Source: Trichosphaerium sp. ATCC 40318
Lineage: Eukaryota; Protista; Tubulinea
DNA length: 64,000 nt
Assembly (NCBI GenBank): GCA_038496445.1
Contig: JALMLS010000228.1
Coordinates: 434,001 to 498,000, forward strand
Direction of reading: 5' to 3'
The translations under genes were made by a program, and so were the position numbers. The notes below the pieces were generated by a model. It did no database searches and was not told the origin of the DNA. It worked only from the letters and a program-made list of their open reading frames with translations. Shown here one piece after another: positions 42,770 through 47,403 of the stretch. Numbering within the stretch: the first letter of the stretch is position 1; each line of letters begins with the position of its first letter.

Positions 42770-43921
42770 TTATTTCTTTATAAATGACTCGCAAATTGAC
42801 CACAAAGCTTCATTCTTTGCCTTGTCAGTAAATTGTAGTCTACCTTGTGATCCGACACCATTCCAGAACTTTCCTGTTTCTTTGTTAGATGAACGCACAA
42901 CATAATAAACTTACCTGTAATCCCTTCCACGTCCTTGTGCGTGGCTAAATACAATGCAATCGCTGCACCATCGGCAGGACTTTTGCCACCACCAAATCCA
43001 AGATCAGAAAGAAGCTTAAATACCGGTGTCATTATTTAACTTTTTTAGTTGGGTGATAAAATTCGTACCTTAGTGTTGCACATGCCGGGCGTCATTGTAT
43101 TCAATATAATCTTTGATCCCTGTTCTCTCAATTTCTCATTCAAAACCCAGCTGAGCATACGGTTTGCTTGCTTACTTTGTTGATAAGCTGCGTTCGCAGA
43201 GTACGTTCTTTTATCGAAGTTGAGATCATTAATATCAAACTGACCAACATAACCTTAAGACTGGTTAACAGCAATAGCTCCTATTTTGCAGTAAAAAAAC
43301 ATACTAGAGGCCACATTGACTATACGGGCATTTCCGGTCTTATTAAGCTGAGGTAGAAGAAGATTTGATAATAAAAAGTATCCCATTACGTTTGTCCCAA
43401 AAACCTTTTCAAGGCCATCAACACTACCTTGTTTTTAAGACTACAGCTTCTCTATGGACAACGTACGTAGTCTCTTTTTTATTTGCACCACCTATACCAG
43501 CATTGTTGACCAGAATGTCCAATCTATCGTACTGTTCTGAAAAGTTTTTTGCAAAGTTACGAATTGACGCTTGTGAAGAGGTGTCAAGGATCATGAGGTG
43601 TACTCTTTCTTCTGGAGCCTTTGTGGTGCCCACTGTCAATAATTAGGCAATTTAAGGCTAGATGGATAGAATTGACATGATTATTGTTCTCGTATGAGCT
43701 ACAATAGCATTTTGGTACCAAGTACGTACTTATGTCTTTAACGGCGGTTTTTCCACGGCTTTCGTTTCTACATCCTAAAATTACAGTGCCGCCCCTTGAG
43801 ACAAGTCCTGATACCAATTATCCTTGTTTACACTCAAAAAACTTGCGATACCTCTTGCAGTCTCCAAACCAACACCTTGGTTAGCTCCTGTCACGACACA
43901 TATTTTACCTGCTATGCTCAT
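42770..43921 (-). CDS. Short-chain dehydrogenase/reductase (retinol dehydrogenase/WWOX-like)
   Basis: VVTGANQGVG, GCRN, LDILVNNAG, AYQQSK (YxxxK), TPG, ALW C-terminus. Confidence 0.9.
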
Positions 43922-44278: not shown

Positions 44279-47200
44279 TTACGATGTACCTTGATCAAGT
44301 GTCCATATATTCCAATGTTGGGCATTATTCCCAGGAACTCTTGCTCTGCATCCGTTACAGCAACTTTGTTTTCTTACACAGAAGCAATGAACTGCTGTTT
44401 GGTCTCCATGAGTTTGCCATGGAAGGTCTTGTGTGATAATTTCATTAGTACAATCCGGATCTTCTAAAGCAACAGCAGCGCATTCTCCACTGTAAAACCA
44501 TTGGTTCCAGATACCTGCACGTCCTCTGATGAGTAATTTTTTGTGACATCTACTTTCAGCGCCATTGTTACACGAATGGTGCTGTCTGCCGCCTCCAAGG
44601 TTTTCCCAGTAGTTGTTGAACCCATCACAATACTTACCAGCTTCTTTGATTATAAGTTGAGGAGGATTGAATGGAGGTGTATCAATCTTTGGTTCCAAGT
44701 CACAATTTCTGCAATCATCCGTCATTGGCCACTTGGGTATACGAGTAACATTTTTGTTAAGATTTGCAGAGTCACAAGAAATGCATTTGTCACCATGTCT
44801 CCATGGGATATCTTGATGTTGTGGTGGAATTACGTAACCAGGGAAGAGACGTCCAGATCCTCTCAAATAGCATGTTGAGTGATATGCTGGATCACCAGCA
44901 TGTACGACTTCTGTAGTTCCAAATGTCTCCGAAGGCAAACGAGCGCGTACTGTAAAGCAAACATCAGCGTTACTACCTGCATTGCCAAGGTTTACTACAA
45001 TGTCTTTGCATAATTGAGGTAGAAGATTAGCTTGTCCGTTGTACTGGTTTGGTTCACTAAATCTTGGCATGACAACAAATCCTTGACAACCAGGTTTTCT
45101 GCCTGTACATAATTTTTCGCATACACTGAGGTCATTGTAAACTCTGTGACAGTCTATGAATCAAAGTAAGAAATACAACGAAGGATGTTAGAGGAAAAAA
45201 CAAACTAACATACCAAAAACTTCACGATAATCAGGAAAGAAACAGTGATCGACACGTCTAAAAATCAAAATAGTCAACACCAATAAACAACAGTGTTGAG
45301 AAAAAACAAAGAAAAGCACGTGGAATACAAAAGGTAAAAAAACTGCTTACGTGAAACCGCCGTCAGGGTTAACCAAACCATAGATGTCTTGGACTTGTCT
45401 GTTGACGTAATCAACATCAACGCAATCCCTATATCCTCTCCATTGCCATTGTATAACGTAAGAACCAAAATCAGATCCTGAAGGAATGGAAAGTCTAACC
45501 ATATCGGAATCTTGAGGTCTGTGCGCAAAGTGATCAAACTTGAAAATACCTTTTACAAAAGGCATTTTACTGTTTGTGTATTCGCAATAATTCCTCAATT
45601 CAAGGTCATCCTTGTACCCAAACAATGTAGCATCATCTCTCCATACACCAAAGGCTGATGGACGAGGGATAAAATTAGGAGAAGAACGAGGGATTTCTCC
45701 GCTGTAGTATTGAAGGAACGGATCGAACCCAGCATTCCGAGCTTGGAACTGTCTGTGATAAACAGGCAAGTCTTTGCAAGCACTGTTTGGTGCCTCGTTC
45801 AGGTACACCTCCATTGAAGCGAAAGAAACTTCTCTAAGCCGTGGTTCATCTTCTGCTTTGACTATAACATAGTATGATGGTTGAGTGTGACCTACAGACC
45901 ACTCAATCTCGAATGGCTGTCCCGGACCAACTTGAACATGTGGAGAGCCTTGTATTCTTGCTGGGCATGGAGTTTGTGTACTTGCTATATCTTTACTTCT
46001 TCCTAGTCCTTGCCAGTTATGGGCGCGAATTGTTGGTAACGAAACTAAAGCAATAACACAGAGAGCCAATACCATTGAAGTTGTCATGTTTTTAGGTGAT
46101 CGGATTGATAAGCCAAGTATAGCAAGAGTCATGAAGATAAAAGCAGATATCGATTTTGTGGCAGATGATTTTGTAGCGCCTTTAGCTGCAATAATTGTCT
46201 CACCAGGATTAGCTGGAGGAAGAGTGGTAGCGAGACATTTGCACATGCGAAGACTGGGAAAAAGTGAGAAATTGTAACAATTAGTTTTGACACGTACCCA
46301 ATTCTTTCATCACCACTTCTGGCGTCACAAGTTACACGTTGTCTATTGCGACCCTGGTCCGCACATCTTGAGTCATCGTAGTAGCATAGACCATCAGTAC
46401 CCATTGTAGCACCTTTGTTGCTGCAACTGCTTACGTACGGAAGTTTGCACCGAAAGCTTTGAGGAAGAATAATGTTCTCAATACGTGTTGGACTGTTAAT
46501 ACGCTCCATGTGAACACGATCACATAGAAGATTCTCCTCAGCGCATCTATTTGTGCATGATTGACCTCTCTACAAAAGTTTAGGAAGGATCAAAGAAACG
46601 AAAAAAAACAAAAAAAATGATCGGATTTTCTGAAAAACGCGAGCCAGCGTTTAATGCGTTTTATTACCTTGGATTGGAACCATGTTTGACGTGGTTTGGT
46701 TTTTGTTGATTCAGTAAGTGTAAGAGGACCAGATCCGCCGTTGTTTGGCCAATAAAAAGCGCCAGTGTTGGCATCACCTTGCTTTATCAGACAATGGAAC
46801 GTTACTTTTCCTGTTCCCTTAATCGGAGCCTTCCACTTCCATGTAGACTTGAGAGGCTTTAGTTCCGCACTGTTATGTGTAATGCTTTGGCTACAAGAGT
46901 GTGAGTTAGGCCAAGGTAACTGGAAGAACGCTACAAGGACAGTAAGACAAAATAGTCAAAAGTTGTCGGAAAAAAAACACATTTTGTTTTCTGAACTTAC
47001 GATTCTGTTCATCAGGTAAAAGCCATTCGCCAACTCTGTTACCATCTTCATCTTGAGCGTAGATTAGAATACCGCGGTATTTGAGGGCATAATTCTTGAC
47101 ACGAATACTAATGTCCATGACAGTGCCAGGAATATATTCTGTGAGCTTAGCTTCTTCTTTTCCAGCCCAAGTGATGTAGGCATTGCTACGAACAACTTTT

Positions 47201-47403
47201 GTAGCCCATGACATACGAGGCTCTGGTCGTTTGTTACAAGTAAGTCTGTCAACTCTACCATTCGGGAATACTCTGTAATCTCCGGGAGGACATCCCCAGT
47301 CAGGTGAAGCTGCATCACAGTTGGGCACTGACTCTGTAGGCCTTGATGCGCCATTTGCTAGAGCTAAAATAGCTACTACACAAAGTACTAAACAAGCACG
47401 CAT
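44279..47403 (-). CDS. Secreted/membrane polyprotein: signal peptide, Reeler domain, Cys-rich domain, TM, internal signal peptide, LPMO-like domain, Cys-rich C-terminal domains
   Basis: MRACLVLCVVAILALANG; Reeler motifs YIPG, YRGILIYA, VGEW, CSQSITH, WKAP, VTFH; in-frame exons lead to TIRA-HNW...WSVGH...YVIQWQWRGYRDCVDV. Confidence 0.8.

Follow-up and report, generated by a model that had tools for sequence, protein, structure and literature searches.

A conserved internal signal peptide is predicted to precede a histidine-start domain resembling lytic polysaccharide monooxygenases in a protist gene

We analysed a gene on the minus strand of a 64,000-nucleotide window of Trichosphaerium sp. 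ATCC 40318 (contig JALMLS010000228.1, positions 434,001 to 498,000); all positions below are those of the window. The gene probably encodes one secretory precursor that is cut in two by the signal peptidase of the endoplasmic reticulum (ER), giving a membrane-held protein with Reeler-like and cysteine-rich (Cys-rich) modules and a soluble product that starts at the first histidine (His1) of a domain resembling lytic polysaccharide monooxygenases (LPMOs) and would carry a copper histidine brace. We refer to this domain, which opens with His-Asn-Trp, and to its relatives as the HNW family. As the initial annotation of the window had described, one continuous spliced frame leads on the minus strand from the Reeler and Cys-rich modules through a pair of hydrophobic segments into the His-start domain. 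The transmembrane-like segment, the loop RSPKN, the signal-like segment, H-N-W, the second His 44 residues further on and the Tyr-containing ending were all found inside exon 4 (46253-45351), a stop-free open frame that holds every element of the junction (Table 1).

An internal signal-like segment is conserved across the HNW family

Relatives of the domain were collected by an exhaustive HMMER search with a 245-residue query segment, which gave 418 cluster representatives at 50% identity, 207 of them at E < 1e-10. Forms were counted among 150 listed relatives of the 418, which are pairwise less than 50% identical. In 82 of the 150, a hydrophobic segment, a short basic loop, a signal-peptide-like segment and a small-x-small motif stand directly before H-N-W, which is the layout of transmembrane segment, loop, signal and His that the initial annotation had suggested looking for in homologues; with the window's gene they make an internal-type set of 83. 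Another 32 are of an N-terminal type, with a Met start and HNW within 60 residues, behind an ordinary signal peptide. For most of the family the match typically lies at about residues 260-920 of a protein of 800-1500 residues and starts within the signal-like segment.

The residue at −1 before His is Ala in 71, Gly in 8 and Ser in 4 of the 83 internal forms, and −3 is A, V, S, T, C, G or I in all of them. The residue at +1 after the small-x-small motif is His, rarely Asp, in 83/83 internal and 32/32 N-terminal forms; in the internal forms it would be the first mature residue only after cleavage at this site. The −3/−1 rule is obeyed at the internal site as strictly as in the N-terminal signal peptides of the same family. 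Two hydrophobic cores are recognizable in 78 of the 83, with median lengths of 14 and 14 residues compared with 13 residues for the family's N-terminal signal peptides, and the loop between them has a median of 7 residues and a net charge of +1 or +2 in 65 of the 78. This junction pattern goes far beyond chance. Only 16 of the 78 have a Met in the loop or where the second segment begins, and 62 lack it; because so few have it, the second segment is not a conserved start site, and Met369 of the window's protein is thus a local feature. Of the 68 internal-type relatives with an initial Met, 48 show a hydrophobic run within their first 40 residues by a crude test.

The fused frame is present in single Trinity transcripts of Flabellula baltica and Rhizamoeba saxonica (Amoebozoa) and of Lapot gusevi (Rhizaria), as well as in metatranscriptome contigs of mRNA length. 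One internal-type relative of 953 residues, P0173, is a single uninterrupted and intronless gene on a 10-kb metagenome contig. The internal layout thus occurs in two eukaryotic supergroups or more, among them Amoebozoa and Rhizaria; in the acantharean Phyllostaurus the form is N-terminal. In a tree of the HNW domain the internal and N-terminal forms are interspersed, with 19 parsimony changes, at least 10 of which are forced by well-supported branches, indicating that the domain always keeps its own signal peptide. The simplest reading is one old fusion followed by repeated loss of the partner.

Some relatives differ in detail. P0047 and P0123 have Asp in place of His1 (DNW) and may be natural variants that have lost the brace. 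Extra C-terminal modules are found in P0003 (Mucin2_WxxW) and in P0006, a protein of 1542 residues with a terminal WW domain. Genes neighbouring P0173 on its ENA contig (10,249 nucleotides) match Pfam GHL15 (glycoside-hydrolase-like) and PAE (pectin acetylesterase).

The His-start domain resembles LPMOs in predicted fold and signature

In an alignment of 115 HNW domains, N2, W3, R8 and His45 are invariant, and His1, P18, G44, Y73, D143, Y148, P154, G186, W194, G196, Tyr197, D199 and D202 are at least 90% conserved; both His residues on which the initial annotation had based its copper site are thus kept in homologues. AlphaFold2, run on this alignment, returned a beta-sandwich with a predicted local distance difference test score of 91.1 and a predicted template-modelling (TM) score of 0.88, in which the last two strands bear W194 and Tyr197, the latter at the start of the last strand (residues 197-205). 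The predicted model has the immunoglobulin (Ig)/fibronectin-type-III-like beta-sandwich of the LPMO type. In agreement with the LPMO-like fold proposed earlier, its residue 1 superposes on the N-terminal His of every LPMO or LPMO-like chain among the 50 best structural matches (residue 1, or 28, 29, 30 or 35 in chains whose numbering counts the signal peptide). Such chains account for about a third of these 50, and the LPMO rows show 14-22% identity to the domain vs 3-13% for the other rows. In a shape search of the ESM Atlas the best match was a haptophyte cluster (TM 0.53) of which 19% of the members carry LPMO_10, and a search with protein language-model features pointed, at 0.88-0.89, to a "polysaccharide monooxygenase" cluster and to clusters bearing LPMO_10, hits that we take as leads only.

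Histidine-brace copper proteins need a free His as their first residue. The HNW family consensus HNWLNSPSR follows the N-terminal LPMO motif H-x-aromatic-aliphatic-x-x-P-S-R and resembles the N-termini of AA10, AA13 and AA15, where AA stands for auxiliary activity. As in AA15 (Thermobia domestica TdAA15A, PDB 5msz) and in AA9, AA10, AA11, AA13 and AA16, the His directly follows a signal-peptidase site, which in the internal forms is a predicted one. The family also has, like LPMOs, another conserved His that comes after a beta-strand, and its last strand bears a conserved Tyr. As read from the alignment, the His at +1, the invariant second His and the Tyr on the last strand are the LPMO signature. 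The family also differs from LPMOs. N2 and W3 are invariant and seemingly family-specific, and the HNW domain is mostly internal, behind a hairpin, whereas the solved LPMOs matched here align from their first mature residue.

Several observations weigh against an LPMO assignment. No AA-family sequence profile matches the HNW family: Pfam profiles gave no match for the window's domain, and AA9, the sole Pfam family matched by more than one of the 115 members, appeared only faintly in 3 of them (E 0.025). Neither phmmer nor a profile search of PDB sequences found an LPMO, and a word-indexed profile search gave only unannotated proteins, with no bridge to LPMO_10 or AA9. A word-indexed search with the 245-residue domain itself yielded no match, most relatives being too long or short for the length window it covers. 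The second His of AA15 is His91; that of the HNW family follows just 44 residues after His1 and is much nearer. Foldseek gave no clear match against PDB, with LPMOs at E of about 0.015 and TM of about 0.3 only, and none against BFVD. Pfam on the six exon translations of the gene yielded nothing relevant, only a sub-threshold Glyco_transf_18.

The lack of a sequence-level link to the AA families would suit an Ig-like binding or adhesion domain that is cut free but forms no copper brace, its likeness to LPMOs being that of a common beta-sandwich. We consider this unlikely, given the His at +1 in nearly every member together with the invariant second His and the conserved last-strand Tyr, the LPMO rows that place residue 1 on their own His1 at higher identity than elsewhere, and the language-model and Atlas searches, both of which lead to LPMO_10-bearing clusters. 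On the model, the domain is LPMO-like by fold and signature and belongs to an unclassified family, not to a known AA family.

The junction lies within one expressed frame

Complementary DNA (cDNA) evidence came from two small public runs of one sample (X1 and X2), in which the locus is present without any differing letter. Introns 1, 3, 4 and 5 are skipped by X1 and X2 contigs exactly at the modelled splice sites. Because the introns are skipped, with CT..AC on the plus strand, these contigs are cDNA. Intron 2 is without cDNA cover, and the joint it leaves, ..WFQSK|RGQSC.., agrees with homologues (WF..GQSC). Record 2 of X1 (784 nucleotides; 45625-46253 joined to 46298-46452) starts in the Cys-rich exon 3, crosses both hydrophobic segments and reaches 400 nucleotides into the His-start domain, with intron 3 removed in frame.

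Other features of the cDNA count against a single message. Contigs may merge overlapping molecules, which makes X1 record 2 strong but not final evidence of one mRNA. Contig depth falls toward the 5' end (15.9, 5.7 and 3), and one X2 contig stops at 46100. Record 7 of X2 (46098-46248) ends in 19 loose letters, and X2 has no cover upstream of it. These letters are the reverse complement of a SMART-type template-switch-oligo tail, which marks a cDNA 5' end. The fall in depth and the ends at 46248 and 46100 fit cDNA that is 3'-biased and partly truncated, as SMART products are, equally well as a minor internal start.

Such a start could come from an internal promoter or from initiation at Met369 (ATG 46087), giving an ordinary signal peptide and HNW protein, with the fused frame a read-through by-product. 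It would draw on the ATG at the very start of the internal signal segment, which has an A at −3, on the two X2 ends and the higher depth downstream, and on the interspersed forms in the domain tree, which suggest that the domain can work without its partner. We nevertheless regard separate messages or starts as quite improbable: the upstream frame has no stop before the domain and hence no other ending, 62 of 78 relatives lack the Met, a message beginning at 46248 would have an ATG 2 nucleotides from its end and a short out-of-frame upstream open reading frame, and 3' depth bias is usual for oligo-dT SMART cDNA. Nor is the domain made solely from a separate transcript starting near 46087, a possibility that the initial annotation had raised, since the X1 contig bridges the junction and Met is found there in so few relatives.

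Three further candidates were rejected. Spliced-leader trans-splicing or an operon is opposed by the missing AG acceptor just upstream of 46087-46100 and by the identity of the loose cDNA letters, which are template-switch oligo and not leader. A stop codon created by polyadenylation is forbidden by the frame at CCT-AAA-AAC. Merging of gene models or chimeric assembly is set aside by a frame that is continuous in one exon, recurs in three Trinity transcriptomes and is an intronless gene elsewhere.

Record 6 of X2, a cDNA contig of 2089 nucleotides, matches the locus only at 45531-45592 (5 letters differ) and 45886-45914 (2 letters differ), where the matches are of equal length but diverged. 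It represents a paralogue of the HNW domain that is expressed from another site in the genome.

Reeler-like and Cys-rich modules accompany the internal forms

Searches with jackhmmer from the window's own modules found a Reeler-like module in 70 of the 82 internal-type relatives and a Cys-rich module in 74, and the forms missed are mostly 5'-truncated sequences. The order Reeler, Cys-rich, HNW is kept in 66/66, and all 32 N-terminal forms lack both modules. Among the homologues, P0003 with 30.3 and P0005 with 36.3 bits score above the cut-off of 21 for the Pfam Reeler model (PF02014). The exon pieces of the window's gene have no Pfam Reeler match, as intron 1 splits the domain; jackhmmer joins residues 21-222 to P0003 and P0005. 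At the other end of the precursor, the last ~130 residues have a PAN/apple-like fold (MANEC, WSC-like), and in translation the HNW product ends without a hydrophobic tail.

A proposed route to two products

We infer the topology, the cut, the copper binding and any activity as follows. An N-terminal signal peptide would bring the Reeler and Cys-rich modules into the ER lumen co-translationally, hydrophobic segment 1 would stop transfer, and the short basic loop would remain cytosolic. Segment 2, acting as an internal signal peptide, would then start translocation anew, and the luminal cut by signal peptidase would fall after ...I-R-A and before His1. One product would be the Reeler/Cys-rich protein, kept at the membrane by the hairpin or by glycosylphosphatidylinositol (GPI) attached at a small-residue patch before segment 1. 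The other would be soluble, starting at His1 of the LPMO-like domain and ending in the PAN/apple-like binding module. Through its free amino group, His1 would join with His45 and probably Tyr197 in the copper histidine brace. The cut would create this amino group, which would explain why the site is kept so precisely in both forms of the family. Given a brace, oxidative action on a glycan is a realistic prospect, if short of an even chance, and copper binding or handling of the X325 kind has a somewhat smaller claim.

That the precursor instead stays uncut, as a permanent two-segment membrane hairpin joining two ectodomains whose His is conserved for a reason other than being N-terminal, would be in keeping with cleavage being our deduction and with two segments hydrophobic enough to stay in the membrane, but is very improbable in view of the −3/−1 rule in 83/83 with His at +1, as in the 32 relatives with a removable N-terminal signal peptide, and of core lengths that are those of signal peptides and not of typical transmembrane segments.

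In the window's protein a GAT/SSA stretch and a spacer precede a 16-residue hydrophobic segment; the stretch is internal, and small-residue linkers are common beside membranes. Among the relatives, an omega-like small-residue triplet lies within 14 residues before segment 1 in 68/78, against a fraction of 0.37 expected from control windows, and the G/A/S/N fraction before segment 1 is 0.46 vs 0.28 in control windows. By its composition the stretch resembles a GPI-attachment signal, which we put forward as a hypothesis and not as a finding. A search for a stand-alone Reeler/Cys-rich protein with a true C-terminal GPI signal gave only truncated or frame-shifted gene models.

A more speculative scheme, which we consider doubtful, is double processing, with GPI transamidase acting at the patch and signal peptidase after segment 2. 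It would yield, in a 1:1 ratio, a GPI-anchored Reeler/Cys-rich protein and a free-His1 enzyme of a new LPMO family, paired at the cell surface, where the former could serve as partner, docking site or electron donor. A precedent is an engineered DAF-hGH chimera with a GPI signal inside the chain, ahead of a second secretory protein; it still received its GPI anchor at the usual position, and did so too when a signal peptide took the place of the hydrophobic part (Caras 1991; PMC2288913). The window's small-residue patch and 16-residue hydrophobic segment followed by a signal peptide have the same layout; the difference is that the chimera was a construct, and here GPI addition is suggested by composition alone. 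If true, double processing would be the natural counterpart of that construct and the first known route that places a histidine-brace enzyme downstream of another protein in one frame.

Relation to known systems

The X325 LPMO-like copper proteins (LaX325, PDB 6ibh; Bim1-type) share with the HNW proteins a histidine-brace-like N-terminus, and both are associated with a cell-surface context of GPI type, which for the HNW proteins is putative. The GPI anchor of X325 sits at the C-terminus of the copper domain, whereas here the GPI-like signal is on the upstream Reeler partner and the HNW product has no hydrophobic tail. No sequence similarity was detected between the HNW domain and X325.

Viral glycoprotein polyproteins, such as flavivirus prM-E and bunyavirus Gn-Gc, have a hairpin in which two short hydrophobic segments are paired and host signal peptidase cuts after the second, an internal signal sequence. 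The gene described here differs from them: it belongs to a protist cell, is spliced, has no viral neighbours and has a single predicted cut site. A cellular case is mammalian IGSF1, in which co-translational cleavage by signal peptidase at an internal signal peptide gives N- and C-terminal products, after which signal peptide peptidase clears the intervening piece (PMC5841168). Both proteins have a signal peptide, an ectodomain, a transmembrane segment, a short loop, a second hydrophobic segment, which in the protist protein is a predicted internal signal peptide, and a second ectodomain. IGSF1, however, carries Ig loops and is cut for trafficking, whereas in the protist gene the cut would have the further effect of exposing an N-terminal residue for catalysis or metal binding, and the layout is conserved across at least two supergroups. 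The initial annotation had proposed an internal cut between Ala and His "as in viral polyproteins"; the predicted site is supported by −3/−1 residues that are strict throughout the internal set, and the precedent has to be widened beyond viruses to include IGSF1 (PMC5841168).

In a literature search over 8.4 million papers, neither an LPMO-like domain placed internally behind a signal peptide nor a pairing of Reeler with LPMO was found described, in line with the earlier remark that the architecture was not known to have been described. What would be new, by comparison with these systems, is the purpose of the cut, namely making the free amino group of a histidine brace. To our knowledge, a brace domain always lies directly behind an N-terminal signal peptide and never downstream of another module, and the need for a free His is taken as the reason. 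The HNW family suggests a way round this rule, by a second, in-chain signal peptide with the N-terminus made by signal peptidase. If confirmed, it would add a large unclassified LPMO-like family of phagotrophic protists (the 418 clusters come from Amoebozoa, Rhizaria and marine metatranscriptomes), a conserved cellular case of a polyprotein processed by signal peptidase, for which viruses and IGSF1 have supplied the examples known to date, and a dedicated Reeler-type partner for an LPMO-like protein. It would also be a warning to annotators that an "internal" LPMO-like domain is not necessarily inactive.

Gene model and surrounding sequence

The six exons lie, on the minus strand, at 47403-47001, 46930-46668, 46569-46298, 46253-45351, 45257-45214 and 45153-44279. 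All five introns are GT..AG, with sizes of 70, 98, 44, 93 and 60 nucleotides; intron 3 (46254-46297), precisely removed in cDNA, is the shortest, the rest measuring 60-98 nucleotides. Features are collected in Table 1.

Table 1. Positions of the gene and of its observed and predicted features in the window
Feature	Position	Strand	Basis or remark
Whole gene	44279..47403	minus	6 exons, continuous frame of 919 residues, stop TAA at 44281-44279; exon assembly and translation
N-terminal signal peptide of the precursor (predicted), MRACLVLCVVAILALANG	47350..47403	minus	Read from the translation; cleavage point approximate
Reeler-like module, residues 21-222, across intron 1	46668..47343	minus	jackhmmer and Pfam matches of homologues
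Cys-rich module, residues 223-335, across the 44-nucleotide intron 3 (46297-46254)	46187..46569	minus	jackhmmer, cDNA splice
Small-residue-rich patch, GPI omega-site-like, AKGATKSSATKS	46151..46186	minus	Composition; directly before hydrophobic segment 1
Hydrophobic segment 1, ISAFIFMTLAILGLSI	46103..46150	minus	Putative stop-transfer anchor or hydrophobic tail of a GPI signal
Short basic loop RSPKN, predicted cytosolic	46088..46102	minus	Translation, loop charge in the family
Internal signal peptide (predicted), MTTSMVLALCVIALVSLPTIRA, ending I-R-A / H	46022..46087	minus	−3/−1 motif, core length
His1 codon CAT, first residue of the predicted mature domain, then N-W	46019..46021	minus	Conservation, alignment with LPMOs
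HNW domain, residues 391-613, LPMO-like beta-sandwich	45351..46021	minus	Predicted fold
His45 codon (..EWSVGH motif; EIEWSVGH here), candidate second brace His	45887..45889	minus	44 residues past His1
Tyr197 codon, within ...WQWRGYRDCVDV (W.GY.DC.DV motif), candidate axial Tyr	45431..45433	minus	Start of the last strand
Conserved Cys-rich C-terminal region, exons 5-6	44282..45257	minus	Last ~130 residues (44671-44282) PAN/apple-like
cDNA 5' end with template-switch-oligo letters	46248	minus	5 nucleotides inside exon 4; X2 record 7

No second copy of the gene was found within the 64-kb window. Downstream of it, also on the minus strand, lies a spliced gene for a short-chain dehydrogenase (43424-43921), of which exon 43781-43921 opens with a TGxxxGxG-type motif and exon 43424-43639 matches Pfam adh_short (E 1.3e-07).

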